Positions 1 to 18,900 of a stretch of 64,000 nt of DNA are shown one piece after another; positions within the stretch are counted from its first letter, which is position 1, and every line of letters starts with the position of its first letter. This stretch comes from Auanema rhodensis (Eukaryota; Animalia; Nematoda). Made by a program: the position numbers and the translations under genes. A model generated the notes under the pieces. That model had not been told where the DNA came from. It saw only the letters and a program-made list of their open reading frames with translations, and did no database searches. The stretch spans positions 16,616,001-16,680,000 of the forward strand of contig OZ059897.1 in NCBI GenBank assembly GCA_964057225.1. Reading direction: 5' to 3'.

Positions 1-163
1 ATTGGCGCAGTTGGTTAGCGCGTGGTACTTATAAGTATAAGTGATGCCGAGGTCAGCAGTTCGATCCTGCTATGGAGCAAAGTTTTGGATCTGGCTGACG
101 CCTTATCTTTCTTGGTATCTATGAAAAACAGATTGTTCAGAATGTTTTTTGATTGTGTCTATA

Positions 164-247
164 GCTCCATTGGCGCAGTTGGTTAGCGCGTGGTACTTAT
201 AAGTATAAGTGATGCCGAGGTCAGCAGTTCGATCCTGCTATGGAGCA
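164..247 (+). tRNA. tRNA-Ile (anticodon TAT/UAU) with 10-nt intron AGTATAAGTG; first complete copy, representative of the array
   Basis: Cloverleaf: acceptor GCTCCAT/ATGGAGC + discriminator A; D arm GCGC-AGTTGGTTA-GCGC; anticodon stem TGGTA/TGCCG with loop CT-TAT-A[intron]A; T arm AGCAG-TTCGATC-CTGCT. A and B boxes are present and a T4 run follows. The intron lies at the canonical 37/38 position and contains TATAAG, complementary to the anticodon loop. Confidence 0.96.
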
Positions 248-3200
248 AAGTTTTGGCTCTGGCTGGCGCCTAATGTTTTCTTGGTATCTATGAAAAACAG
301 ATTGTTCAGAATGTTTTTTGATTGTGTCTATAGCTCCATTGGCGCAGTTGGTTAGCGCGTGGTACTTATAAGTATAAGTGATGCCGAGGTCAGCAGTTCG
401 ATCCTGCTATGGAGCAAAGTTTTGGCTCTGGCTGGCGCCTTATGTTTTTTTGGTATCTATGAAAAACAGATTGTTCAGAATGTTTTTTGATTGGGTCTAT
501 AGCTCCATTGGCGCAGTTGGTTAGCGCGTGGTACTTATAAGTATAAGTGATGCCGAGGTCAGCAGTTCGATCCTGCTATGGAGCAAAAATTTGGCTCTGG
601 CTGGCGCCTAATGTTTTCTTGGTATCTATGAAAAACAGATTGTTCAGAATGTTTTTTGATTGTGTCTATAGCTCCATTGGCGCAGTTGGTTAGCGCGTGG
701 TACTTATAAGTATAAGTGATGCCGAGGTCAGCAGTTCGATCCTGCTATGGAGCAAAAATTTGGCTCTGGCTGGCGCCTTATGTTTTTTTGGTATCTATGA
801 AAAACAGATTGTTCAGAATGTTTTTTGATTGGGTCTATAGCTCCATTGGCGCAGTTGGTTAGCGCGTGGTACTTATAAGTATAAGTGATGCCGAGGTCAG
901 CAGTTCGATCCTGCTATGGAGCAAAAATTTGGCTCTGGCTGGCGCCTAATGTTTTCTTGGTATCTATGAAAAACAGATTGTTCAGAATGTTTTTTGATTG
1001 TGTCTATAGCTCCATTGGCGCAGTTGGTTAGCGCGTGGTACTTATAAGTATAAGTGATGCCGAGGTCAGCAGTTCGATCCTGCTATGGAGCAAAGTTTTG
1101 GATCTGGCTGACGCCTTATCTTTCTTGGTATCTATGAAAAACAGATTGTTCAGAATGTTTTTTGATTGTGTCTATAGCTCCATTGGCGCAGTTGGTTAGC
1201 GCGTGGTACTTATAAGTATAAGTGATGCCGAGGTCAGCAGTTCGATCCTGCTATGGAGCAAAGTTTTGGCTCTGGCTGGCGCCTAATGTTTTCTTGGTAT
1301 CTATGAAAAACAGATTGTTCAGAATGTTTTTTGATTGTGTCTATAGCTCCATTGCCGCAGTTGGTTAGCGCGTGGTACTTATAAGTATAAGTGATGCCGA
1401 GGTCAGCAGTTCGATCCTGCTATGGAGCAAAGTTTTGGCTCTGGCTGGCGCCTTATGTTTTTTTGGTATCTATGAAAAACAGATTGTTCAGAATGTTTTT
1501 TGATTGGGTCTATAGCTCCATTGGCGCAGTTGGTTAGCGCGTGGTACTTATAAGTATAAGTTATGCCGAGGTCAGCAGTTCGATCCTGCTATGGAGCAAA
1601 AATTTGGCTCTGGCTGGCGCCTAATGTTTTCTTGGTATCTATGAAAAACAGATTGTTCAGAATGTTTTTTGATTGTGTCTATAGCTCCATTGGCGCAGTT
1701 GGTTAGCGCGTGGTACTTATAAGTATAAGTGATGCCGAGGTCAGCAGTTCGATCCTGCTATGGAGCAAAGTTTTGGCTCTGGCTGGCGCCTAATGTTTTC
1801 TTGGTATCTATGAAAAACAGATTGTTCAGAATGTTTTTTGATTGTGTCTATAGCTCCATTGGCGCAGTTGGTTAGCGCGTGGTACTTATAAGTATAAGTG
1901 ATGCCGAGGTCAGCAGTTCGATCCTGCTATGGAGCAAAGTTTTGGCTCTGGCTGGCGCCTAATGTTTTCTTGGTATCTATGAAAAAACAGATTGTTCAGA
2001 ATGTTTTTTGATTGTGTCTATAGCTCCATTGGCGCAGTTGGTTAGCGCGTGGTACTTATAAGTATAAGTGATGCCGAGGTCAGCAGTTCGATCCTGCTAT
2101 GGAGCAAAGTTTTGGCTCTGGCTGGCGCCTAATGTTTTCTTGGTATCTATGAAAAAACAGATTGTTCAGAATGTTTTTCGATGGTGTCTATAGCTCCATT
2201 GGCGCAGTTGGTTAGCGCGTGGTACTTATAAGTATAAGTGATGCCGAGGTCAGCAGTTCGATCCTGCTATGGAGCAAAGTTTTGGCTCTGGCTGGCGCCT
2301 AATGTTTTCTTGGTATCTATGAAAAACAGATTGTTCAGAATGTTTTTTGATTGTGTCTATAGCTCCATTGGCGCAGTTGGTTAGCGCGTGGTACTTATAA
2401 GTATAAGTGATGCCGAGGTCAGCAGTTCGATCCTGCTATGGAGCAAAGTTTTGGCTCTGGCTGACGCCTAATGTTTTCTTGGTATCTATGAAAAACAGAT
2501 TGTTCAGAATGTTTTTTGATTGTGTCTATAGCTCCATTGCCGCAGTTGGTTAGCGCGTGGTACTTATAAGTATAAGTGATGCCGAGGTCAGCAGTTCGAT
2601 CCTGCTATGGAGCAAAGTTTTGGCTCTGGCTGGCGCCTTATGTTTTTTTGGTATCTATGAAAAACAGATTGTTCAGAATGTTTTTTGATTGGGTCTATAG
2701 CTCCATTGGCGCAGTTGGTTAGCGCGTGGTACTTATAAGTATAAGTTATGCCGAGGTCAGCAGTTCGATCCTGCTATGGAGCAAAAATTTGGCTCTGGCT
2801 GGCGCCTAATGTTTTCTTGGTATCTATGAAAAACAGATTGTTCAGAATGTTTTTTGATTGTGTCTATAGCTCCATTGGCGCAGTTGGTTAGCGCGTGGTA
2901 CTTATAAGTATAAGTGATGCCGACGTCAGCAGTTCGATCCTGCTATGGAGCAAAGTTTTGGCTCTGGCTGGCGCCTAATGTTTTCTTGGTATCTATGAAA
3001 AACAGATTGTTCAGAATGTTTTTTGATTGTGTCTATAGCTCCATTGGCGCAGTTGGTTAGCGCGTGGTACTTATAAGTATAAGTGATGCCGAGGTCAGCA
3101 GTTCGATCCTGCTATGGAGCAAAGTTTTGGCTCTGGCTGGCGCCTAATGTTTTCTTGGTATCTATGAAAAACAGATTGTTCAGAATGTTTTTTGATTGTG

Positions 3201-6200
3201 TCTATAGCTCCATTGGCGCAGTTGGTTAGCGCGTGGTACTTATAAGTATAAGTGATGCCGAGGTCAGCAGTTCGATCCTGCTATGGAGCAAAGTTTTGGC
3301 TCTGGCTGGCGCCTAATGTTTTCTTGGTATCTATGAAAAAACAGATTGTTCAGAATGTTTTTTGATTGTGTCTATAGCTCCATTGGCGCAGTTGGTTAGC
3401 GCGTGGTACTTATAAGTATAAGTGATGCCGAGGTCAGCAGTTCGATCCTGCTATGGAGCAAAGTTTTGGCTCTGGCTGGCGCCTAATGTTTTCTTGGTAT
3501 CTATGAAAAAACAGATTGTTCAGAATGTTTTTCGATGGTGTCTATAGCTCCATTGGCGCAGTTGGTTAGCGCGTGGTACTTATAAGTATAAGTGATGCCG
3601 AGGTCAGCAGTTCGATCCTGCTATGGAGCAAAGTTTTGGATCTGGCTGACGCCTTATCTTTCTTGGTATCTATGAAAAACAGATTGTTCAGAATGTTTTT
3701 TGATTGTGTCTATAGCTCCATTGGCGCAGTTGGTTAGCGCGTGGTACTTATAAGTATAAGTGATGCCGAGGTCAGCAGTTCGATCCTGCTATGGAGCAAA
3801 GTTTTGGCTCTGGCTGGCGCCTAATGTTTTCTTGGTATCTATGAAAAACAGATTGTTCAGAATGTTTTTTGATTGTGTCTATAGCTCCATTGGCGCAGTT
3901 GGTTAGCGCGTGGTACTTATAAGTATAAGTGATGCCGAGGTCAGCAGTTCGATCCTGCTATGGAGCAAAGTTTTGGCTCTGGCTGGCGCCTTATGTTTTG
4001 TTGGTATCTATGAAAAACAGATTGTTCAGAATGTTTTTTGATTGGGTCTATAGCTCCATTGGCGCAGTTGGTTAGCGCGTGGTACTTATAAGTATAAGTT
4101 ATGCCGAGGTCAGCAGTTCGATCCTGCTATGGAGCAAAAATTTGGCTCTGGCTGGCGCCTAATGTTTTCTTGGTATCTATGAAAAACAGATTGTTCAGAA
4201 TGTTTTTTGATTGTGTCTATAGCTCCATTGGCGCAGTTGGTTAGCGCGTGGTACTTATAAGTATAAGTGATGCCGAGGTCAGCAGTTCGATCCTGCTATG
4301 GAGCAAAGTTTTGGCTCTGGCTGGCGCCTAATGTTTTCTTGGTATCTATGAAAAAACAGATTGTTCAGAATGTTTTTCGATGGTGTCTATAGCTCCATTG
4401 GCGCAGTTGGTTAGCGCGTGGTACTTATAAGTATAAGTGATGCCGAGGTCAGCAGTTCGATCCTGCTATGGAGCAAAGTTTTGGATCTGGCTGACGCCTT
4501 ATCTTTCTTGGTATCTATGAAAAACAGATTGTTCAGAATGTTTTTTGATTGTGTCTATAGCTCCATTGGCGCAGTTGGTTTGCGCGTGGTACTTATAAGT
4601 ATAAGTGATGCCGAGGTCAGCAGTTCGATCCTGCTATGGAGCAAAGTTTTGGCTCTGGCTGGCGCCTAATGTTTTCTTGGTATCTATGAAAAACAGATTG
4701 TTCAGAATGTTTTTTGATTGTGTCTATAGCTCCATTGGCGCAGTTGGTTAGCGCGTGGTACTTATAAGTATAAGTGATGCCGAGGTCAGCAGTTCGATCC
4801 TGCTATGGAGCAAAGTTTTGGCTCTGGCTGGCGCCTAATGTTTTCTTGGTATCTATGAAAAACAGATTGTTCAGAATGTTTTTTGATTGTGTCTATAGCT
4901 CCATTGGCGCAGTTGGTTAGCGCGTGGTACTTATAAGTATAAGTGATGCCGAGGTCAGCAGTTCGATCCTGCTATGGAGCAAAGTTTTGGCTCTGGCTGG
5001 CGCCTAATGTTTTCTTGGTATCTATGAAAAACAGATTGTTCAGAATGTTTTTTGATTGTGTCTATAGCTCCATTGGCGCAGTTGGTTAGCGCGTGGTACT
5101 TATAAGTATAAGTGATGCCGAGGTCAGCAGTTCGATCCTGCTATGGAGCAAAGTTTTGGCTCTGGCTGGCGCCTAATGTTTTCTTGGTATCTATGAAAAA
5201 CAGATTGTTCAGAATGTTTTTTGATTGTGTCTATAGCTCCATTGGCGCAGTTGGTTAGCGCGTGGTACTTATAAGTATAAGTGATGCCGAGGTCAGCAGT
5301 TCGATCCTGCTATGGAGCAAAGTTTTGGCTCTGGCTGGCGCCTAATGTTTTCTTGGTATCTATGAAAAACAGATTGTTCAGAATGTTTTTTGATTGTGTC
5401 TATAGCTCCATTGGCGCAGTTGGTTAGCGCGTGGTACTTATAAGTATAAGTGATGCCGAGGTCAGCAGTTCGATCCTGCTATGGAGCAAAGTTTTGGCTC
5501 TGGCTGGCGCCTAATGTTTTCTTGGTATCTATGAAAAACAGATTGTTCAGAATGTTTTTTGATTGTGTCTATAGCTCCATTGGCGCAGTTGGTTAGCGCG
5601 TGGTACTTATAAGTATAAGTGATGCCGAGGTCAGCAGTTCGATCCTGCTATGGAGCAAAGTTTTGGCTCTGGCTGGCGCCTAATGTTTTCTTGGTATCTA
5701 TGAAAAACAGATTGTTCAGAATGTTTTTTGATTGTGTCTATAGCTCCATTGGCGCAGTTGGTTAGCGCGTGGTACTTATAAGTATAAGTGATGCCGAGGT
5801 CAGCAGTTCGATCCTGCTATGGAGCAAAGTTTTGGCTCTGGCTGGCGCCTAATGTTTTCTTGGTATCTATGAAAAACAGATTGTTCAGAATGTTTTTTGA
5901 TTGTGTCTATAGCTCCATTGGCGCAATTGGTTAGCGCGTGGTACTTATAAGTATAAGTGATGCCGAGGTCAGCAGTTCGATCCTGCTATGGAGCAAAGTT
6001 TTGGATCTGGCTGACGCCTAATGTTTTCTTGGTATCTATGAAAAAACAGATTGTTCAGAATGTTTTTTGATTGGGTCTTTAGCTCCATTGGCGCAGTTGG
6101 TTAGCGCGTGGTACTTATAAGTATAAGTGATGCCGAGGTCAGCAGTTCGATCCTGCTATGGAGCAAAGTTTTGGCTCTGGCTGGCGCCTAATGTTTTCTT

Positions 6201-6335
6201 GGTATCTATGAAAAAACATATTGTTCAGAATGTTTTTTGATTGGGTCTATAGCTCCATTGGCGCAGTTGGTTAGCGCGTGGTACTTATAAGTATAAGTGA
6301 TGCCGAGGTCAGCAGTTCGATCCTGCTATGGAGCA
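164..6335 (+). tRNA. 37 consecutive full-length intron-containing tRNA-Ile(UAU) genes (left block)
   Basis: (6422-164)/~169 = 37 units. The tRNA body is essentially invariant; point variants at 1355, 2540, 2924, 4581, 5926 and intron variants at 1562, 2747, 4100. Confidence 0.93.
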
Positions 6336-6421
6336 AAGTTTTGGCTCTGGCTGGCGCCTAATATTTTCTTGGTATCTATGAAAAAACAGATTGTTCAGAA
6401 TGTTTTTTGATTGGGTCTATA

Positions 6422-6469
6422 GCTCCATTGGCGCAGTTGGTTTGCGCGTGGTACTTATAAGTATAAGTG
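6422..6469 (+). pseudogene. 5' exon + complete intron of the interrupted tRNA-Ile(UAU) copy
   Basis: GCTCCATTGG...TATAAGTG followed directly by the element TIR at 6470. Carries a D-loop A>T variant at 6443. Confidence 0.93.
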
Positions 6470-6512
6470 CGTTACATATCGTTTCTTCCCGTCTTTTCAT
6501 GGTCGGAAGATA
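6470..6512 (+). repeat. Left 43-bp terminal inverted repeat CGTTACATATCGTTTCTTCCCGTCTTTTCATGGTCGGAAGATA
   Basis: Exact reverse complement of 10999-11041; the next base inward mismatches. Confidence 0.97.
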
Positions 6513-6527
6513 AAGAAAAATGGACAC

Positions 6528-9500
6528 ATGTTACCGTTTGTTCATATTGACATTGAAGGTAGAGGACTGTTAGCATTATGGGATTCTGGAGCTACGGTCT
6601 CATATATTCCGTTCTCCACATTGGCATATATTGGAAGACAATATTTTACAAAATATTCTAAATCTGCATCCACTGCAAATGGATCAGAGTTTCGCTTTGT
6701 GGGAAAATGCAAGTTAGATGTGGGTATAGCAGGTTACCAAGTGGAACACGAATTTTTAATATCTGAAGACAATGACTGTCCAGGACAAATGTTACTTGGT
6801 ACTGATTTTATGCGTACGTTGGAAGAAAGAGAGATATTTACTACATTAAAACTATGTAAAGGAAAGTTGATTGTTGGTAATATGGAAACACCCTTAGTAA
6901 AACCTGGTTGTTTTGCATATAAAACCACAACTAAAACAGTAAATATCATAAGTTTGTCCACAGTAACAGTTCCACCACATAGTACCTCCCACATATCTTT
7001 GCAAACAGGACCAGAATTAGATTTTGATCAATATGCTCTTTTAAAACCTAGCATAGGTCCTATCTCAATTCCAGATGCCGCCATAGGACCTTTTCCTATT
7101 ACTATGGTAGTATCAAACAATTCTTCAAAGCCAATTAAAATTAATAAAAATGACCACATTGGTTCAGGACTTATAGCATCTAAAGAAATTATGAACGATT
7201 ATGTTCCACCTGAAGCTGATTGGGAAGATAAGTTACCAACTTTTCCTCAGCATCTTTTGGATGATTTGAACTTCAATTCTTGCACTCTGTCCCATAAACT
7301 GAAGAAAAATCTGATTACAATCATTAAGGAAAACCAAACGGCATTTTTCAACCATGATCATAATATTGGTCTCTTTTGCGGACCAGTTGAACATGCCATT
7401 CCTATAAGATCCGATATGGATTTCCCAAAAAGTAGATCTTACAGAGTACCATTGGGTAAGCAAGAAGAAGTAGAACGGCAAGTGAAAGAAATGTTGTCGC
7501 AAGGTATAATCGAAAATTCGACGGCTACTTTCACTAGTCCAGTTGTTCTTGTGAAAAAGAAAGATAATTCTTTCCGGTTCGTAACTGACTTTAGAGCATT
7601 GAATAGTGTTACTAAGAAACAAACATACAGCATCCCACACATTCCTGATATCATAGACTTAGCGGCTGAAGCTCAGTTCTTTTCGAATTTTGATCTCATT
7701 TCTGGTTTCTTCCAAATACCGTTGAAACGCTCAGATAGACACCTAACTGCTTTTACCACTCCATCAGGTACCTATCAGTATTGCCGAATGCCTATGGGAT
7801 TGTGTGGAGCGCCACACACTTTTCAATCCGCAGTGCGATACTTGCAATCTCTTGTTAGATGCAAACTGTTTGTATATCTAGATGATTTGCTAATAATTTC
7901 GAACTCAGCTGATGAACATTTAAGAGATATACAAGAAGTGCTGAAAAAGGTCACTGAACTAGGGTTAAAAATTAAGTTATCTAAATGTTGCTTTGCAGCC
8001 ACTGAAGTAAAGTTTTTGGGTTTTGTAATAGGTAGAAATGGTGTTAAACCAGATCCTGCTAAGATACAGGCTGTTTCCGAATTTCCAAATCCAAGTACAG
8101 TTACGGCTGTCAGATCCTTTCTAGGTATGACTAACTATTTTCGACGGTTTATTCAAAATTATGCCGGAATAGCTGAGCCATTGTATAAGTTAACACATAA
8201 GGATACTCCTTTTGAGTGGAAATCGGAACATGCAGACGCATTTAAAACTTTAAAAACATTACTGTGTACTGCCCCTGTACTGAAACCTCCTAAAGCAGAC
8301 CAACCTTTTGTTATAGAAAGTGATGGCAGTATGATCGCTGTGGGAACAGTTTTATTGCAATCAGCAGAGAAAAATTCTCCATTACACCCGATTGCGTTTG
8401 CTAGTAGAAAGTTGACTCCAGCGGAACGGAAATATCCTCCTATTGAAGTTGAAGCACTCGGTTTAGTCTTTGCTCTTCAACAATTCCGTACCTATGTATT
8501 AGGAGTACCTACCACAGTTATCACAGATCACCGACCATTAACCAGTTTAATGTCGCGTAAAGATCTGATAGGTAGATTAGCCAAGTATCAACTAATGATA
8601 CAAGATTTCAACATAAAGATTGAATATCGTCCTGGCAAATTAAACAGTGTCTGTGATGCTCTCTCCAGGTATATAGGAAACGAAGCAAATGACAGTCGTC
8701 CTACTAAACCAAAGGACAAAGTAAAACCTGTTGATGCTTTTATTGCTCATATTACAACTATTTCTTCTATTGACCAACTAAATTGTGAAGAAATACGGAA
8801 AGTTCAAGCTGGAGTTCCCTGGATTCGCGAAGCACTTTCTCAAATTAATAATGATAACTGTCCGGCTAATATATCAGACCGGTATGAAGAACGAGAAGGC
8901 ATATTACATGCAAAACAAGCGAAAAATTATTTAAAACCATCTATTATTTTGCCTCGAAACGACAAAATAACTGATGTTGTCATCAAATTTTTTCACGAAG
9001 ATTCCAAAATTGGTGCACACCTAGGTATAAATAAAACTACTGATGCGATTCGACGACGATTCTTTTGGACTAATATGGTTCCACAAATAACTGAATTTAT
9101 TAATCGTTGTACAAAATGTGCAAGTAGGAAATCTAACCCACACCAATCGTATATTCAACCTATGGGAAGATTTGTTATACCCGAAAAGCCATTTGATCGT
9201 ATTCATGTAGATATACTAGGTCCTTTACCTCGCACTAATGATGGACATCGATACATCTTGAGTATTCAAGATGCTTTTAGTAAATGGGGAACAACTTGCC
9301 CATTAATAACACAAACGGCTACTGAAATCACAAAAGCGTTTGTAATTAGATTTGTTTTCATATATGGACCACCAATGAGTATGATAACCGATAATGGTAG
9401 TAGCTTTTTGTCATCTGAATTTCAAGCTATGTGTAAACAATTTGGAATTAAACACACTACTACGCTACCATATCATAAAAATGCTAATGGACAAGTTGAG

Positions 9501-10061
9501 AGACTTCATAGAACTTTGGAAGAAGCTCTCTCTTCATTCGTGAATGAACAACAAACTAACTGGGATATACACCTACCCAAAGTTATGTTTGCGATCAATA
9601 CGTTACCAAACTCATCAACATCTATTAGTCCATATGTTGTATTATTTGGTCGGGATGCAAGACTTCCTATTGACCATCAATTGCCTGGAAACAATCTTCA
9701 AACTGAAGAACCAGCCAATCCTACAGAAGATTTTGTCAATAGATCGCTAAAACAAAATGAAAGCACATCTAATATAGTGAAAGATAGAATTGAAACATGC
9801 ACAAAGAAGAATGAACAACGGTACAATACACGAAATAGAACACAAAATAAAGAAATTCAGGTTAATGACTTAGTTATGATAAAAGTGAATTCTACTCGAA
9901 ACAAACTAACACCTTCATTCGAAGGGCCTTATTTAGTTACAGCAGTTCAAAGATCTTTCGTCGTGGTTCAAACAGATAAAGGAAAAAGCAGAAGAGTACA
10001 CAAGGACTTCGTCAAACCTTACCAACGGACAACATCTATTCCGGTTATCACAATTTCTTGA
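6528..10061 (+). CDS. pol: Ty3/Gypsy Pol polyprotein: aspartic protease, dUTPase-like linker, reverse transcriptase, RNase H, DDE integrase with GPY/F module (1177 aa)
   Basis: Protease LWDSGA and MLLGTDF; RT SPVVLVKKKD, FRFVTDFRALN, FDLISGFFQI, MPMGL, YLDD; RNase H ESDGS, EVEAL, TDHRPL, CDALSR; integrase HHCC (H..H..CTKC), HVDILGP, TDNGSSF, NGQVER, FEGPY. PR-RT-RH-INT is the Gypsy domain order. No stops or frameshifts. Confidence 0.97.
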   Translation: MLPFVHIDIEGRGLLALWDSGATVSYIPFSTLAYIGRQYFTKYSKSASTANGSEFRFVGKCKLDVGIAGYQVEHEFLISEDNDCPGQMLLGTDFMRTLEEREIFTTLKLCKGKLIVGNMETPLVKPGCFAYKTTTKTVNIISLSTVTVPPHSTSHISLQTGPELDFDQYALLKPSIGPISIPDAAIGPFPITMVVSNNSSKPIKINKNDHIGSGLIASKEIMNDYVPPEADWEDKLPTFPQHLLDDLNFNSCTLSHKLKKNLITIIKENQTAFFNHDHNIGLFCGPVEHAIPIRSDMDFPKSRSYRVPLGKQEEVERQVKEMLSQGIIENSTATFTSPVVLVKKKDNSFRFVTDFRALNSVTKKQTYSIPHIPDIIDLAAEAQFFSNFDLISGFFQIPLKRSDRHLTAFTTPSGTYQYCRMPMGLCGAPHTFQSAVRYLQSLVRCKLFVYLDDLLIISNSADEHLRDIQEVLKKVTELGLKIKLSKCCFAATEVKFLGFVIGRNGVKPDPAKIQAVSEFPNPSTVTAVRSFLGMTNYFRRFIQNYAGIAEPLYKLTHKDTPFEWKSEHADAFKTLKTLLCTAPVLKPPKADQPFVIESDGSMIAVGTVLLQSAEKNSPLHPIAFASRKLTPAERKYPPIEVEALGLVFALQQFRTYVLGVPTTVITDHRPLTSLMSRKDLIGRLAKYQLMIQDFNIKIEYRPGKLNSVCDALSRYIGNEANDSRPTKPKDKVKPVDAFIAHITTISSIDQLNCEEIRKVQAGVPWIREALSQINNDNCPANISDRYEEREGILHAKQAKNYLKPSIILPRNDKITDVVIKFFHEDSKIGAHLGINKTTDAIRRRFFWTNMVPQITEFINRCTKCASRKSNPHQSYIQPMGRFVIPEKPFDRIHVDILGPLPRTNDGHRYILSIQDAFSKWGTTCPLITQTATEITKAFVIRFVFIYGPPMSMITDNGSSFLSSEFQAMCKQFGIKHTTTLPYHKNANGQVERLHRTLEEALSSFVNEQQTNWDIHLPKVMFAINTLPNSSTSISPYVVLFGRDARLPIDHQLPGNNLQTEEPANPTEDFVNRSLKQNESTSNIVKDRIETCTKKNEQRYNTRNRTQNKEIQVNDLVMIKVNSTRNKLTPSFEGPYLVTAVQRSFVVVQTDKGKSRRVHKDFVKPYQRTTSIPVITIS

Positions 10062-10648
10062 AGGTAGTTTTTTTAACAAAATCAAACTGTTGAATTTTTT
10101 ATTTTATTTTGTGCCATTTCTGATTGTAACACTTCTTTGTTGTTGATTGATTTTCTCTGAGAAGTCTGCTATTGTTTTACAAGGTTTTGTTTTATTACTC
10201 CAACTCTCATCGAGTAGATTTTTTTTTCAACATTCTCTTGTGAATCTTGCTATTTTTTTATGCTTAATCATTACTTGTATTCACCTTATGGACATTAGTC
10301 ATACGGGTTAAACGAGTTTTCATTTTTTTGTACAGAACGGGCTCGACCTATTCTCAGGGTAACACCGTACCTGTACAACTCAAGAAAATGAACGACTATA
10401 TCACAGTCGAATGGTTTAGAAGCAAAGCTCTCGTTTGCAAGCATTTCACTACTCAAGTGAATGAAATAGAATCTACTCGATACTACATTTCGAATTCAAC
10501 AAACTTGAAGAGACAATAGCTAAACTTTCAAATCGTATTGTATACATTTTTTTTTATCCACTACACCATGATTTTTTTTTCCAACATCCAACTATCTTAA
10601 AAAGTGAATTAATTTATTTTGTTTTTGAACGAGGACGTTCAACTTTTT

Positions 10649-10660
10649 AAGGTGGGCGGA
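10649..10660 (+). promoter_or_regulatory. Polypurine tract (plus-strand primer site) AAGGTGGGCGGA
   Basis: Preceded by CGAGGACG and a T5 tract and followed immediately by TGTCACA, the usual arrangement at the start of a Gypsy 3' LTR. Confidence 0.75.
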
Positions 10661-11041
10661 TGTCACATCTGCAAGCACATGGTAAACATGTGCGCGCTAT
10701 TCAAATAGCGGGAGCCTGAACAAGCCCCGCCTACAACATGGGACACACATGACACTCTTGCTTCTGGTCTAACCCAGATAGGTTGTCTTATAGTCATGTG
10801 AGTCTCATCTCTATATCATCTATATATATACTCTATTTAATACTTTATCATATCTCTTTATATTCTTTCTTAATGTAATTCTTATATTGTATTTTCTTGT
10901 TATCTGATAATGAATCCTTTTCTCTTTAAGTATTTGTCTTAATAAGGAAATCGAAGCGTTCGGGTCTGCCTACCTAAGGAACAAGGTAGAAGTACATATA
11001 TCTTCCGACCATGAAAAGACGGGAAGAAACGATATGTAACG
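10661..11041 (+). repeat. Single 3' LTR-like segment (381 bp), TGTCACAT...ATGTAACG
   Basis: Starts with TG directly after the PPT, has imperfect inverted ends and a TATA-like run near 10821, and ends at the TSD. There is no second direct copy in the window, so the LTR call rests on position and motifs. Confidence 0.7.
10999..11041 (-). repeat. Right 43-bp terminal inverted repeat TATCTTCCGACCATGAAAAGACGGGAAGAAACGATATGTAACG
   Basis: Exact reverse complement of 6470-6512. Confidence 0.97.
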
Positions 11042-11081
11042 AGTGATGCCGAGGTCAGCAGTTCGATCCTGCTATGGAGCA
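11042..11081 (+). pseudogene. Duplicated AGTG + 3' exon of the interrupted tRNA-Ile(UAU) copy
   Basis: AGTG-ATGCCGAGGTCAGCAGTTCGATCCTGCTATGGAGCA resumes the unit exactly. Confidence 0.93.
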
Positions 11082-11166
11082 AAGTTTTGGCTCTGGCTGG
11101 CGCCTAATGTTTTCTTGGTATCTATGAAAAACAGATTGTTCAGAATGTTTTTTGATTGTGTCTATA

Positions 11167-13455
11167 GCTCCATTGGCGCAGTTGGTTAGCGCGTGGTACT
11201 TATAAGTATAAGTGATGCCGAGGTCAGCAGTTCGATCCTGCTATGGAGCAAAGTTTTGGCTCTGGCTGGCGCCTAATGTTTTCTTGGTATCTATGAAAAA
11301 CAGATTGTTCAGAATGTTTTTTGATTGTGTGTATAGCTCCATTGGCGCAGTTGGTTAGCGCGTGGTACCTATAAGTATAAGTGATGCCGAGGTCAGCAGT
11401 TCGATCCTGCTATGGAGCAAAGTTTTGGCTCTGGCTGGCGCCTAATGTTTTCTTGGTATCTATGAAAAAACAGATTGTTCAGAATGTTTTTTGATTGGGT
11501 CTATAGCTCCATTGGCGCAGTTGGTTAGCGCGTGGTACTTATAAGTATAAGTGATGCCGAGGTCAGCAGTTCGATCCTGCTATGGAGCAAAGTTTTGGCT
11601 CTGGCTGGCGCCTAATGTTTTCTTGGTATCTATGAAAAAACAGATTGTTCAGAATGTTTTTTGATTGGGTCTATAGCTCCATTGGCGCAGTTGGTTAGCG
11701 CGTGGTACTTATAAGTATAAGTGATGCCGAGGTCAGCAGTTCGATCCTGCTATGGAGCAAAGTTTAGGCTCTGGCTGGCGCCTAATGTTTTCTTGGTATC
11801 TATGAAAAAACAGATTGTTCAGAATGTTTTTCGATGGTGTCTATAGCTCCATTGGCGCAGTTGGTTAGCGCGTGGTACTTATAAGTATAAGTGATGCCGA
11901 GGTCAGCAGTTCGATCCTGCTATGGAGCAAAGTTTTGGCTCTGGCTGGCGCCTTATGTTTTCTTGGTATCTATGAAAAACAGATTGTTCAGAATGTTTTT
12001 TGATTGTGTCTATAGCTCCATTGGCGCAGTTGGTTAGCGCGTGGTACTTATAAGTATAAGTGATGCCGAGGTCAGCAGTTCGATCCTGCTATGGAGCAAA
12101 GTTTTGGCTCTGGCTGATGCCTTATGTTTTCTTGGTATCTATGAAAAACAGATTGTTCAGAATGTTTTTTGATTGGGTCTATAGCTCCATTGGCGCAGTT
12201 GGTTAGCGCGTGGTACTTATAAGTATAAGTGATGCCGAGGTCAGCAGTTCGATCCTGCTATGGAGCAAAGTTTTGGCTCTGGCTGGCGCCTAATGTTTTC
12301 TTGGTATCTATGAAAAAACAGATTGTTCAGAATGTTTTTTGATTGGGTCTATAGCTCCATTGGCGCAGTTGGTTAGCGCGTGGTACTTATAAGTATAAGT
12401 GATGCCGAGGTGAGCAGTTCGATCCTGCTATGGAGCAAAAATTTGGCTCTGGCTGGCGCCTAATGTTTTCTTGGTATCTATGAAAAAACAGATTGTTCAG
12501 AATGTTTTTTGATTGTGTCTATAGCTCCATTGGCGCAGTTGGTTAGCGCGTGGTACTTATAAGTATAAGTGATGCCGAGGTCAGCAGTTCGATCCTGCTA
12601 TGGAGCAAAGTTTTGGCTCTGGCTGGCGCCTAATGTTTTCTTGGTATCTATGAAAAAACAGATTGTTCAGAATTTTTTTCGATGGTGTCTATAGCTCCAT
12701 TGGCGCAGTTGGTTAGCGCGTGGTACTTATAAGTATAAGTGATGCCGAGGTCAGCAGTTCGATCCTGCTATGGAGCAAAGTTTTGGATCTGGCTGACGCC
12801 TTATCTTTCTTGGTATCTATGAAAAACAGATTGTTCAGAATGTTTTTTGATTGTGTCTATAGCTCCATTGGCGCAGTTGGTTAGCGCGTGGTACTTATAA
12901 GTATAAGTGATGCCGAGGTCAGCAGTTCGATCCTGCTATGGAGCAAAGTTTTAGCTCCGTTCGGCGCCTAATGTTTTCTTGGTATCTATGAAAAAACAGA
13001 TTGTTCAGAATGTTTTTTGATTGTGTCTATAGCTCCATTGGCGCAGTTGGTTAGCGCGTGGTACTTATAAGTATAAGTGATGCCGAGGTCAGCAGTTCGA
13101 TCCTGCTATGGAGCAAAGTTTTGGCTCTGGCTGGCGCCTAATGTTTTCTTGGTATATATGAAAAAACAGATTGTTCAGAATGTTTTTCGATGGTGTCTAT
13201 AGCTCCATTGGCGCAGTTGTTTAGCGCGTGGTACTTATAAGTATAAGTGATGCCGAGGTCAGCAGTTCGATCCTGCTATGGAGCAAAGTTTTAGCTCCGT
13301 TCGGCGCCTAATGTTTTCTTGGTATCTATGAAAAAACAGATTGTTCAGAATGTTTTTTGATTGTGTCTATAGCTTCATTGGCGCAGTTGGTTAGCGCGTG
13401 GTACTTATAAGTATAAGTGATGCCGAGGTCAGCAGTTCGATCCTGCTATGGAGCA
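11167..13455 (+). tRNA. 14 consecutive full-length intron-containing tRNA-Ile(UAU) genes (right block)
   Basis: Starts at 11167 ... 13372 (13 periods). Point variants at 11369 (U33>C), 12412, 13220 and 13375. Confidence 0.93.
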
Positions 13456-13927: not shown

Positions 13928-14093
13928 ATTTATTGATCTTCTTTATCGGTTGTTTCTCGCTGCTCATAAAATTTCTTTTTGTATTAAAACATTTTTCTCG
14001 GGTCACAAATTATTCTTTTTGATTTATTGAAAAATTCCCCTTTTTTTTCCTGTCGCGCTCTGAATTCTGTTTAAAAACATTATGTGTGAAATA

Positions 14094-15318
14094 TTATGTG
14101 GTTGCATTGTTCCCCTGCCCCCCCCCCCCACCCAACCCCTAAAATAGTAAAAAAAACATATTTAGCGAAAAGTTTTTATTTTTTTTAGTATTGTCCTTTC
14201 TTCTGGATCACTTTCTCCCATCTCTGTGTCAAACTTCTGATTCCTTTCCTGAAAAAAACTTTATTTTTTGATTCAAAAAAATTTTTAACAAAGCCTTCAA
14301 CTTCCTCAAAGTTTTTGAAATTTTCACCCCTCAAACTGTGTTCCATAGACCTAAACAGATGGAAATCTCAGCAATGAGGGCGAGCGTTGTCGTGCAACAA
14401 CGCTATACTTCTGTTCCTAAGCTCCTCTCGGGCTTCAATGTTAACACTGAGCCGTCTGAGTTGCTCAGAATAATGTTCTCCATCTATGGTTCTACCGTAA
14501 GGTAAAATCTCATAGAAGAGAACTCCGTTTTCGTTCCAGAAAACGGACAGAAGTGCCTTTTTGGCTGTTTGCGGGTTGGCCCTTGGGGTCATCGGAACCG
14601 ATTCTCCAGGGTTAACCCAATACTTAGCCCTGTTTGGGTTGGAGTAGAGAATCCACTTCTCATCTCCAGTTACCAAACTTTTGAAAAAACCCCTTTTTTG
14701 GCTCAATTTCAGAAGATCTTGAGCCAAAGAAACTCTTGACCTGAGATTACTCTCAGACAACAGATGTGGGGAAAATGGGGAGAGCTTCTGAATTTTCCCT
14801 ATTTTTTTCAACCGTCGAGAGACAGTTGCTTTGTGAACATTCAATTGGTTCCCGATTTGGAGTTGTGTAGCTCCAGGAGTGCAATCGAGAACCTTTTGAA
14901 GGTCACAGTTGCTGAATTTTTCAGCAGCGCCGGGTCTTGGACGATCTTGGAGATCGAACTGGCCAGCTCTAAAGCGGCTAAACCACTTCTTACATGTTGT
15001 ATACGATGGAGAAGAATCTCCGTAAACAACTTTCATTTTTCTGAAGGTTTCTTTGGCAGAGATTCCTTCATTAAAATGATGAAGAAGGGTGTAGCGCATA
15101 AGTGCAAAATCCATAACGAAAATGAGAAACAAAAAAACGTTCAAAGAAAAAATAGTTTTTTCAAATGTAAAGTTTTAAAATTTAAAATTTTTTTATTGTT
15201 ATTATATTTAAAAATATTCAAATTTTTAAATTTTGTATTTATTTTTTTTTAATTTTGTAAAATTAGCATAATATTTAATTTTTCTCAAGGGGGGCAGGGG
15301 AACAATGCAACCACCTAA
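14094..15318 (-). mobile_element. Mariner (Tc1/mariner, DD34D-type) DNA transposon, 1225 bp, internally deleted
   Basis: 30-bp TIRs TTA(T/G)GTGGTTGCATTGTTCCCCTGCCCCCC at 14094-14123 and 15289-15318 (1 mismatch); TA duplication at 14092-14093 and 15319-15320; transposase ORF inside. Confidence 0.95.
14185..15114 (-). pseudogene. Mariner transposase, inactivated by an internal deletion/in-frame stop
   Basis: MDFALMRY... with HTH region (KKWFSRFRAG, DRPRPG), LVTGDEKWILY and LHDNARPH, then TGA at 14368-14370, then in-frame DFHLFRSMEHSL...RWEKVIQKKGQY*. The YSPDLAP segment is missing. Confidence 0.92.
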
Positions 15319-15531
15319 TATAACACAAAAGCAAAGAAAATCAGTAAAGTGTCTCGCATGAAGATACCTCTAAAATCTTGATTTCCAATACTTCGACTAA
15401 AGCAAGGAGATCTAAATTTGTTAGGGCAGGCAGATCTTTCTCTAGTTTCATCATTTATTTAGCATTATTTTTTTTGACCGTTCCAGAGCATTTTTTTCGA
15501 CCATTTCGACAATTGGATTTCGACCACATTT

Positions 15532-15918: not shown

Positions 15919-18900
15919 AACGATCGACAGCAGGGACCCTAAGTCGTCAGAAGATTGAGATAAACTTGAAAACAAAGAAAGCAACAAAAATATGAAAAAA
16001 ATTGGAACAATGCTCTAAGAAATAAAAATTAAGAATATGAGAAATAAGAGAATCATCTTTTCAGCTATTTATATATTAGTAACCATTATTATGTATATCA
16101 TACATATATATATATATATATATAGATATATATTATATATTTATATACATACATGAGAAGAAGGTAAACTTATATGAAAAGTACACGCATATATTGAATA
16201 TTTATTTAATATAATTTTTCAATTATTTAGATCCTTTCGTCTAGTTTCATGTTTTCTTCTCGTTTTTATTTCTGTCACAAAGTCGCAAATAAGCTATAGC
16301 ATGTTCGGAGTTTCGGTAAGATTGTTGATGTAAGCTATGAAATAAAATTTTTAGAAATAGAGGTATTTCCAAAGAATAAAAACGACCAATATCCTGAAAG
16401 ATATTACTCAGTATAGTTTCTGTGATGGTTTTATTAATACATTTTCTGTTAATTTCATCTTTAATTCATAATGAGTATCAAATTAGAACGTAAGATATAA
16501 GACACGTTTCTATGTCATTACCATCCCAGTTCTTACGAAATGATATTATTGTTAGAAATTATCCATTTTTTGAAATAAATTGCTCCAAAGAATAAGAATT
16601 TCACATTTTTTGTATTGTTTTGCATCAAAAACTTAGATAACACTATTTTTCAAAAATATTGTTATAAATCTATACATGTACTCCAATGGTAATCATTTTA
16701 TAGTGCTTTGCAAATTTTTTAAAGCTGAAAATCTAATAAGCGTAACTTTAAAAATATCTGCCAAAGTATGTCTTCCAATGTTTAGAAAGAAGAATTTAAA
16801 ATTTTTTTCATATGATGCAGCTGATGAACGCTCATCATCAGAAGTTGAAGTTATATATAGAATATCAAAAATTTATTAGCGTAAAGTATCATGCATCATT
16901 CCATATGCGCATCAATCTAGAGTTACATCTGTATTAATTCACCTAAATCTTGTATTTTTTTATTTTCTTCTCTCATTCTGTTCTCAAAAAAATTTGTTTA
17001 CAGATTAGCGATATAAGCAATTCCGATTTTAGAAACATTGCAGCACTTCCAGAGAAATAGCGTGTTTTTTTCCAGTAGAATTTATATTTTTTAGCATATT
17101 TTTGTTAAGAGAGTTCAAATAAAAAATGATGTCGATGTTGCTAGCTTATAACTATATATGATTATTACTCATATTGAACTTTATAATTTTAATATATTAA
17201 TAGAAATATATAAATATATATGTATCTAAATGTATTTATATTATATTATTAGCATATTTATTTTATTGCAAAATATTTATTTATTTCTGTTTCTTTATCT
17301 TCACTTTTGAGCTTTCTTTCCTTAAATTAATATAATTAATTTTCTTTACTGGAAGGTTATAAAACATATGTTTTCACTATAAAAAGAAAAAACATTTATG
17401 AATTAGCTTTTTCAATTCTAGGTATCACGTTCTTTCCTGAGCTACAATCTCTAGATGTTCGAAACTTCCTCTTACATCTGAAATAATATATTTTTTTAGT
17501 ACACAAATCTTCAATCGAATGTTCAGCTTTTGGCTGAATAATTTGGTTGCTTTTCTTTGAATCCTGATTTCTTTTTATCTTAATATTTCTCTTTCTCACT
17601 CTTAATTCACAATTCCATATACACACTCTTTCTCTTATTCCCTTTCACTTATCCCTCTCTCTTTAAATTATATTCCAATTTTAAAAATAGTTTCATCTGC
17701 CTTTAGGCTGTTTGTTCAAAAGAATAATAATATATATTTATAATGATATGTTTCAAATTCATTAAAAATCTTACTATGTTTCTATTCATCAAAGACAAAG
17801 TTCCTTCTCAGTTCTTTAGATCATTCACTAAGGTTTGTTTTTCATACATTTTTAAGAAAATAATACTCTGCACCATATTTCAATAAACACAAATGAGTAG
17901 AGTGGAAACTTCATTCCTATTTTAGCATTTGTACAAATTAATTACGTCACAAACGAGCTGAACAAGCAGTATTTAAAATTTCATTTTGAATGATGAAGAC
18001 AAAACTTTAAAAAAATTACTCAAATATCTACGAATAAGAATGAATTAGCTGGTCCATTTTCTCGTGAATATTGAAAAGAAGCTACTGATGAGTGTTGCAA
18101 GTGATTCTAAATTTTGTCGAACGAAGATGTCTAGGCTACTTGCCTTACTTCATTTTCTCTTATATTCATCAGAAGTACTTAAAAATAATTATAGATAGTA
18201 TTATTATATTTTATATTATTTCTTTTAAATGTAATAATATAAATACATTATTAAGTGCTATATATATATATATATATGTACAGGATATAATATTATTTTG
18301 TTGGAATGTTTGAAATTCGTTATTAAATAATTCTTGAAATTGAAGAAAATTTATAAGTAATACTTTTTCCTGGAAACAGATTTGAAAGCAACCAGTCTTA
18401 TTCACGCAATTTCTTGAAATGATTTCGAACTACGTTCGTGTCAACGTGAGCGTTTAAACTTACAGCTTAACATCTCAATTCAGACGTAAAATATTAGAAC
18501 AAACAAGGACAAAATTAGACTGCTTATAATTAAAAACAAATTATATTTTAATTTGATTATATGAAGTAATATTTAGTTTTTTTTGTAAATGTTTTGTTAA
18601 TGTTTGAATATTTAAAGTCGATCAATGAAAGATAAAAGCTTTGCAGAAGTAAGTAAAAGCATAAGATGCTTCCAGGCAGATTTATTGAATGTTTTTCTAT
18701 AATATCGGAAGCAAATGACTTCGCACTTTTTAAATCTAAAACTTTCTTTTTTTTTCTGTATTGCCATATGTACCTCTTTTAATACCTTCCTTACTTTTGC
18801 TATGTATTTCGTATCTCCCTCTTAGTCTCTTTTTCTCTCTCCTTATGTTCATATTTATTTCTTCACTAAAACTTCATCTCATCGTTTCCTACAATTTTCA

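Follow-up and report, generated by a model that had tools for sequence, protein, structure and literature searches.

DIRS elements encode a tyrosine recombinase, contain an internal complementary region and make no target-site duplication (TSD). Ginger transposons have an integrase-like transposase without reverse transcriptase (RT) or RNase H (RH) and end in TGTNR termini, and Ginger1 targets CCGG/CCGT (PMC2836005). Nematode genomes harbor non-canonical endogenous retroviruses (ERVs), members of Ty3/gypsy (Metaviridae) with the gene order gag-env-pol (Sacco et al. 2022, J Gen Virol 103:001739, as represented in PMC13524379). LTR retroelements also give rise to faulty products: aberrant truncated or inverted LTR-retrotransposon cDNAs have been documented in virus-like particles, and template switching or autointegration accounts for defective cDNAs in Arabidopsis virus-like particles and for the Ty1 "suicide" products (PMC7197481).

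We analyzed an element within a 64-kb stretch of DNA (the whole of which we call the window) that resembles each of these systems in part. We read it, with a probability of roughly 0.7, as a defective DNA copy, truncated at its 5' end, of a Ty3/gypsy ERV of the nematode gag-env-pol type, with a second U5 end; a one-off faulty copy of this kind is the most likely explanation, not a new class of element. Because its membership in that lineage is read from Pol and the LTR terminus only, we file it as a truncated derivative. The features of the element and of its insertion site are as follows.

1-13455, + strand: tandem array of intron-bearing tRNA-Ile(UAU) genes, period 169-170 bp
6422-11081, + strand: split tRNA-Ile(UAU) gene, with gene positions 1-48 at 6422-6469 and 45-84 at 11042-11081
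6466-6469 (left) and 11042-11045 (right): the two TSD copies, AGTG, 4 bp
6470-6512, + strand: left terminal inverted repeat (TIR), repeating in inverse orientation the final 43 bp (U5 end) of the 3' LTR
6513-6527, + strand: leader of 15 bp between the left TIR and the pol ATG
6528-10061, + strand: intact, uninterrupted pol ORF, 1177 aa
6543-6815, + strand: protease domain, within the pol ORF
7551-8030, + strand: RT domain, within the pol ORF
8217-8609, + strand: RNase H domain, within the pol ORF
8964-9134, + strand: integrase zinc finger, within the pol ORF
9183-9476, + strand: integrase core, within the pol ORF
10062-10648, + strand: non-coding spacer from the pol stop to the polypurine tract
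10649-10660, + strand: putative polypurine tract abutting the LTR start, assigned by analogy with relatives
10661-11041, + strand: putative 3' LTR, 381 bp, TGTCAC...GTAACG, its start inferred and its end set by the TSD
10999-11041, + strand: right TIR, formed by the 3' LTR's own U5 terminus

A preliminary description of this DNA had reported perfect 43-bp TIRs, an intact 4-bp TSD, an uninterrupted protease-RT-RNase H-integrase ORF that starts only 15 bp from the left TIR, and no gag, all of which our analysis bears out. The two arms are 43 nt long and 100% complementary (6470-6512 against 10999-11041), the repeat ends abruptly at 43 nt, and a search of the whole window at up to 3 mismatches matches just these two arms, where the shuffle expectation is 0 (100 shuffles). 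AGTG lies on both sides, and all five Pol domains are found. The left end of the element is 58 bp from the pol ATG, and tblastn with a relative's sequences finds no gag or env similarity across the whole window (best E = 4.8). The same description placed TIRs where two LTRs would be. This stands insofar as no direct repeat flanks the pol ORF, the ends having just the 43-bp inverted repeat in common, but the element keeps, after a putative polypurine tract, one LTR-like 3' end whose tip constitutes the TIR: the right end of the element reads ...ATGTAACG, followed by the 4-bp TSD, with a purine tract and TGTCAC 381 bp upstream. The spacer at 10062-10648 has no similarity to relatives, the 3' 940 bp of the element contain short ORFs only (none above 63 codons), there is no internal copy of the termini in the element, and the lineage-type primer-binding site TGGAGGTYC is absent from the window.

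The host array comprises 51 intact units and one disrupted unit, and at least 52 units in all, since it passes the left edge of the window. Set individually against an intact array unit, the left flank corresponds to positions 1-48 and the right flank to positions 45-170; the flanks thus share positions 45-48, and exactly 4 bp were duplicated. Within this large tRNA-Ile(UAU) array, the element entered precisely at the 3' boundary of the 10-nt tRNA intron, the last 4 nt of which formed the target. Targeting of tRNA genes was considered and set aside: no tRNA gene lies within 10 kb of the Diploscapter relative. The host tRNA-Ile was considered as the reverse-transcription primer of the lineage and rejected, as the primer-binding sites of relatives (TGGAGGT...) mismatch its 3' end. 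Eight further ORFs in the window have a mariner transposase as their sole match. Going by the relatives of Pol, the host is probably a rhabditid.

The order of Pfam domains in Pol (RVT_1, RT_RNaseH_2, RT_RNaseH, Integrase_H2C2, rve) is the protease-RT-RNase H-integrase order of Ty3/gypsy, and the best match among solved structures is Ty3 Gag-Pol (PDB 7q5b, E = 3e-109). Over the whole protein, Pol is 42-55% identical to nematode gag-env-pol Ty3/gypsy ERVs, and it aligns end to end with one Diploscapter Pol without interruption. RT fragments reach 67-75% identity to nematode elements, the best, for RT-RH alone, being short Auanema fragments. Across the protein searches, identity was at most 55% for whole Pol and at most 75% for RT-RH alone, the protease end alone gave no match, and an exact-protein look-up of the window Pol returned no record. 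The Pol to which the integrase belongs has its closest kin, on sequence comparison, among nematode ERVs, and adds a young and apparently intact member to their lineage. The intact pol and the perfect repeats indicate that the element is young, and speak to its youth only.

Relatives with readable structure are ordinary proviruses. In Diploscapter (L001) the order is LTR (424 bp)-gag-env/pol-LTR with a 4-bp TSD, GCGG; the LTR reads TGTGCC...CGTAACG, its 3' LTR comes after a polypurine tract, and its 5' LTR is followed by a primer-binding site (TGGAGGT...). In C. brenneri (L002) the LTRs end in ...GTTACG, the primer-binding site is of the L001 type and the TSD is again 4 bp. These are the two relatives with readable ends, and both have two LTRs. 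All relatives with a readable neighborhood have gag and/or env upstream of the protease, including L004/L005, L006 and L007, and an env resembling glycoprotein B and Monjiviricetes fusion proteins is found in P0001, P0003-P0005 and L004-L006, lying upstream of pol in the closest relatives. A contig from another organism that looked pol-only (L003) opens 193 nt upstream of its gene, contains no repeats and was set aside as of no use as evidence. The window element and L001 have in common the purine tract, the TGT-starting LTR, the ...GTAACG end and the 4-bp TSD, and the body of the window element is collinear with the 3' two-thirds of the ordinary gag-env-pol relatives.

The start of the reading frame also points to a longer parent. 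In seven env-pol polyproteins it aligns with the opening residues of the protease, just past their hydrophobic anchor, which makes the body of the element the 3' part of such a parent. The ATG of pol falls at residue -1, where the seven relatives have other residues. The leader at 6513-6527 is in frame with pol, and the frame stays open upstream, through the left TIR and into the host flank, whereas the first ATG of the element, at 6520, is out of frame and opens a 17-codon upstream ORF; both the out-of-frame first ATG and the frame open into the flank are expected of a cut through a longer coding region. The junction is purine-rich (18/21), in a stretch that is partly the TIR itself. A central polypurine tract, in the form of a copy of the 3' polypurine tract and LTR start at the truncation point, was considered and rejected, its alignment score of 7 lying under the 95th percentile of the null.

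Set against the known systems, the element is like the nematode gag-env-pol ERVs in its Pol (42-55% identical to Diploscapter, Auanema, Heterorhabditis and Caenorhabditis members), its PR-RT-RH-IN order, similar U5 end, putative polypurine tract with TGT-starting LTR and 4-bp TSD, and unlike them in having no 5' LTR, primer-binding site, gag or glycoprotein-B-like env, with an inverted 43-bp U5 tip instead. Among the wider traits of Ty3/gypsy (Metaviridae), the order of Pol domains and the short TSD are present, and two direct LTRs and gag are absent. It shares with DIRS elements an RT between inverted terminal repeats but differs in its DDE integrase (rve core, H2C2 zinc finger), its 4-bp TSD, the absence of a recombinase domain and the absence of an internal complement of the ends. 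With Ginger1 and Ginger2 (PMC2836005) it has in common a Gypsy-type integrase, a TSD of 4 bp and TIRs some tens of bp long, whereas the RT and RNase H, CGTTAC termini, AGTG target, full Pol, polypurine tract and LTR are not features of Ginger. Like the defective LTR-retroelement cDNAs (PMC7197481), it combines a single LTR, joined directly to a truncated body, with an inverted end sequence, and would likewise be a by-product of normal replication. The autointegration products described there are circles with a junction between an LTR end and an internal site, unlike the window element, which is linear, has two U5 ends and is chromosomally integrated with a TSD, and we were unable to arrive at its structure from such circles. 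Deletion-circle and inversion-circle topologies worked by hand never put the inverted 43-bp U5 tip beside the pol leader, and autointegration was rejected as the direct source.

An integration-competent aberrant cDNA, which the preliminary description had offered as one of two readings, fits these observations: the right end is a normal U5 and the left end its inverted copy, the body is collinear with ordinary relatives, and the readable relatives carry gag and/or env. The copy would span a few codons upstream of the protease, the protease itself, RT, RNase H, integrase, the spacer, the polypurine tract and the full 3' LTR. It would lack gag and env as well as the 5' LTR and primer-binding site, in whose place the final 43 bp of the LTR stand inverted. 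A minus-strand template switch is, we infer, the most likely way in which the second U5 end arose: the growing minus strand would have left its RNA template near the env/pol boundary and copied the still single-stranded 5' end of its own or a co-packaged minus-strand DNA. With an inverted U5 copy at the left and U5 at the right, the same U5 integrase-recognition end stands at both termini, so that integrase, either the element's own or that of a full-length sibling, could link the two of them to the chromosome in a single concerted step, and such joining would leave the 4-bp duplication usual for the lineage. Having no promoter-bearing 5' LTR, R, primer-binding site or gag, the element should be incapable of a further round of reverse transcription.

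Two observations sit uneasily with an aberrant cDNA. A truncation only a few codons from the protease N terminus, with an ATG at -1, is a notable coincidence for a random break, and copying from a tRNA-primed minus strand should leave primer-binding-site bases outside the left end, where none are present.

The left repeat was also considered as a pre-existing feature of the lineage near the env/pol boundary, akin to the internal complement of DIRS elements. Inverted U5 copies sought inside L001 and L002 score at null level, and this candidate was rejected.

A one-off origin could also have drawn its second U5 end from a second DNA molecule, in that the U5 ends of two cDNAs, one of them a short fragment, were integrated and their free ends joined by the host. 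Two separate donor ends are routinely integrated in concert in in vitro integrase assays, no homology is visible across the 43-bp junction, where the repeat ends sharply, and the lack of primer-binding-site bases outside the left end would be accommodated. This course requires two molecules to share one integration complex, one of which must have shed about 5 kb while the other was reduced to a 43-bp remnant. The sequence offers nothing to tell this course from a template switch; we regard it as improbable.

The other reading in the preliminary description was a new class of TIR-bounded retroelement between Gypsy and Ginger, for which we find no positive support. A genuine family of gag-less Pol elements, derived from Gypsy and bounded by two identical U5 ends that integrase reads, would propagate as DNA or with the help of full-length siblings, and could be a first step towards Ginger1-like transposons. 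Perfect TIRs, a clean 4-bp TSD, intact catalytic domains and an ORF that opens with an ATG exactly at the protease boundary would suit such a family, and the "reverse evolution" of Ginger1 from a Gypsy element has been raised (PMC2836005). The element is, however, present once in the 64-kb window, no relative exceeds 75% identity in the collections searched, and metagenome contigs scanned with 29 nt of the TIR yielded 0 matches. The relatives with readable context are all ordinary, with no internal inverted U5 copy in L001 or L002, and the complete LTR and polypurine tract have been kept, needlessly for a DNA-borne element. Furthermore, the upstream ATG lies out of frame before pol, and the RNA of the element would have no 5' R, primer-binding site or gag. 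We also know of no retroviral-type integrase that excises integrated DNA. A true TIR-bounded family is thus unlikely, and it is very unlikely that the element is a founder or member of a gag-less TIR-bounded Pol family whose U5 ends are handled by its own integrase, a living case of the Gypsy-to-Ginger1 "reverse evolution" (PMC2836005) with a possible preference for tRNA genes.

Finally, although the tRNA array around the insertion is highly repetitive and hard to assemble, an assembly artefact (a misjoin at the left) or a deletion or inversion of a full-length provirus after insertion is highly improbable, given that the array carries on in register on either side, with an overlap of exactly 4 bp between the flanks, that the TIR arms are identical and the element is found nowhere else in the window, and that a later rearrangement would not bring an inverted U5 tip directly up to the left TSD copy.

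For annotation, the locus is a warning that a "Pol between TIRs with a TSD" may be a truncated provirus, and that calling such a unit a new class demands copy-number evidence. If it is a one-off, the element is a clean natural record of an integrase accepting a DNA with two U5 ends and making the normal 4-bp duplication, an event otherwise seen mostly in vitro or in virus-like-particle DNA. It would further show that one replication error is enough to convert an LTR retroelement to a form that is bounded by TIRs and encodes an integrase, as the Gypsy-to-Ginger hypothesis requires of its starting material.

The element at window 6470-11041 appears, from its ends and coding sequence, to be a 5'-truncated copy of a nematode endogenous retrovirus (ERV) with a single LTR and a U5 end at each side. 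Its perfect 43-bp inverted repeat encloses a single uninterrupted ORF encoding, in order, an aspartic protease, reverse transcriptase (RT), RNase H (RH), an H2C2 zinc finger, and an integrase core, and the pol ATG lies 15 bp inward from the left arm. With up to three mismatches allowed, the arm has only two matches in the 64 kb (none expected by chance), and AGTG borders both ends of the element. No 5' LTR, lineage-type primer-binding site, gag, or env was found in the whole window. The terminal inverted repeats (TIRs), 4-bp target-site duplication (TSD), intact ORF, 15-bp spacing, and missing 5' LTR and gag of the preliminary description were thus all recovered, confirming its factual statements; the feature is genuine and was described well.

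Features of the element and its surroundings (window coordinates)
1-13455: tandem tRNA-Ile(UAU) array
6466-6469: left AGTG copy, from flank comparison with an intact unit
6470-6512: left arm of the inverted repeat
6528-10061 (+): pol ORF, 1177 aa
10649-10660: purine tract, followed by TGTCAC, 381 bp upstream of the element's right end
10661-11041: putative 3' LTR, its end fixed by the TSD and its start inferred
10999-11041: right arm of the inverted repeat
11042-11045: right AGTG copy, from the same comparison
14085-15327: mariner-like DNA transposon, ORF on the minus strand

The host array has a period of 169-170 bp, comprises at least 52 near-identical units, and extends past the window's left edge. 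Every unit bears a tRNA-Ile(UAU) gene (mature length 74 nt) whose 10-nt intron occupies the canonical position 37/38; ARAGORN identifies 51 intact genes, and one more is split by the element. An array this large for one isoacceptor is unusual in itself. We aligned each flank on its own to an intact unit: 6422-6469, on the left, corresponds to unit positions 1-48, and the sequence from 11042 onward, on the right, to positions 45-170. The array thus keeps its phase on both sides of the element, with a duplication of exactly 4 nt, the final four of the tRNA intron, located at its 3' splice junction. This pattern reads as the outcome of staggered-cut integration, and the in-phase flanks and 4-base duplication argue against misassembly or later rearrangement. 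The 5' half of the disrupted gene has one base difference from the intact units, in the D-arm region (47/48 identical, alignment score 46), which is an older variant or else arose after the gene was disabled. No tRNA gene lies near the Diploscapter relative.

Just past the array end, the mariner-like transposon has 39-bp TIRs (92% complementary) and a 258-aa ORF with Mos1-type HTH and Transposase_1 domains; it is probably defective, the ORF being shorter than a full mariner transposase. Window 16000-64000 is very AT-rich (20-33% G+C; about 25% for the window outside the tRNA array), with no ORF longer than 126 codons, no tandem repeats scoring 200 or more, and no host gene identified.

Over the whole Pol, the nearest proteins are 42-55% identical and belong to Diploscapter pachys, Heterorhabditis, Auanema, and several Caenorhabditis species, all nematodes; an RT-RH-only query gave short Auanema fragments as top matches (67-75% identity), and the best solved-structure match of Pol is Ty3 Gag-Pol (7q5b, E = 3e-109). 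In the closest relatives, a glycoprotein-B/Monjiviricetes-fusion-like domain is fused to Pol or precedes it. The lineage is known in the literature as non-canonical nematode ERVs of order gag-env-pol (Sacco et al. 2022, as far as described in PMC13524379). Judged by sequence, the window Pol belongs to it. Every relative with a readable neighborhood carries gag and/or env upstream of the protease, and no inverted U5 copy was found inside the relatives, L001 and L002 scoring at null level. The L003 contig, which begins 193 nt ahead of its gene and has no repeats, did not contribute to this comparison.

Architecture of relatives
L001 (Diploscapter): LTRs at 6259-6682 and 16003-16426 (424 bp each, 98.6% identical); gag and env
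L004 and L005: env in its own ORF, whose end is 28 nt upstream of the pol ATG
L006: gag, env, pol
L007: gag-like, then pol

The Diploscapter locus looks like a textbook element, with a gag-like ORF followed by an env-pol ORF, a primer-binding site (TGGAGGT...) after the 5' LTR, a purine tract adjoining the 3' LTR, LTRs running from TGTGCC to CGTAACG, and a 4-bp TSD (GCGG). In the C. brenneri locus (L002), two LTRs ending GTTACG (one carries a single interruption) accompany a primer-binding site of the same type and a 4-bp TSD. The window element ends ...ATGTAACG, followed by the TSD; this sequence, with the purine tract and TGTCAC, matches the relatives' layout, and we therefore read 10661-11041 as an apparently ordinary 3' LTR. 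The right arm would then be the tip of its U5, and the left arm an inverted copy of that tip. LTRs of the lineage start with TG yet end in ...ACG rather than the usual ...CA (L001 6682 and 16426; L002 5667 and 14270; window 11041), and the integrase-recognized 3' terminus appears non-canonical in all three species.

At the other end, window residue 2 aligns in seven relatives to a site far inside a longer protein, hundreds of residues from its start and right after a hydrophobic segment resembling the env anchor, so the window ORF starts at the protease start of a longer parent. The pol frame is open upstream of the ATG across both leader and TIR and continues so into the tRNA flank, and the element's first ATG (6520) is out of frame with pol, opening a 17-codon ORF; the 5' region resembles a cut through coding sequence rather than a tuned 5' UTR. 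In the closest relatives (L001 10001-15781, L006, and proteins P0003-P0007), a glycoprotein-B-like env and Pol form one continuous ORF with the protease directly after the env membrane anchor.

By its Pol and LTR terminus the element derives from nematode gag-env-pol Ty3/gypsy ERVs, but it lacks the second LTR, gag, primer-binding site, and env of a complete member. The earlier suggestion of an integration-competent aberrant cDNA is supported. What is firm is that a linear DNA carrying identical integrase-recognition ends on either side entered the chromosome by a single concerted reaction, producing a 4-bp duplication of the lineage's usual size. We favor a switch during reverse transcription as the source of the second U5 end: the minus strand would have come off close to the env/pol boundary, and its 3' end would then have gained its last 43 nt by copying the single-stranded 5' end of a minus-strand DNA. 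A possible though less likely alternative, integration of two molecules followed by host end-joining, would yield the identical product. Lacking a 5' LTR, R, primer-binding site, and gag, the truncated copy is expected to be incapable of further retrotransposition, and its intact pol and identical arms mean only that it is recent.

The other earlier suggestion, a new class of TIR-bounded retroelement, is not supported. In favor of a real TIR-bounded family, the truncation falls a few codons at most from the N-terminus of the protease, with an ATG exactly at position -1, where relatives show A, S, T, Q, or H; in the L004 lineage pol has its own ORF, which makes a parental ATG conceivable, although the coincidence must still be explained. 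Protein look-up found no record of the exact window Pol, no protein in the searched collection exceeded 75% identity, whether the query was the complete Pol, the RT-RH part, or the protease end, and the TIR was not found in metagenome contigs. This coincidence, with copy-number searches conducted outside the source genome, leaves such a family about one chance in ten or slightly less. The structure could not be derived from autointegration circles, the best-documented aberrant forms (PMC7197481). Ginger is excluded by the presence of RT and RNase H and by differing termini and target (PMC2836005), and DIRS by the DDE integrase, the TSD, and the absence of an internal complementary region in the element.

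The element illustrates how a single error can leave a Gypsy derivative with Ginger-like ends; it is a tidy natural example and a caveat for annotation, with a small chance of being more.
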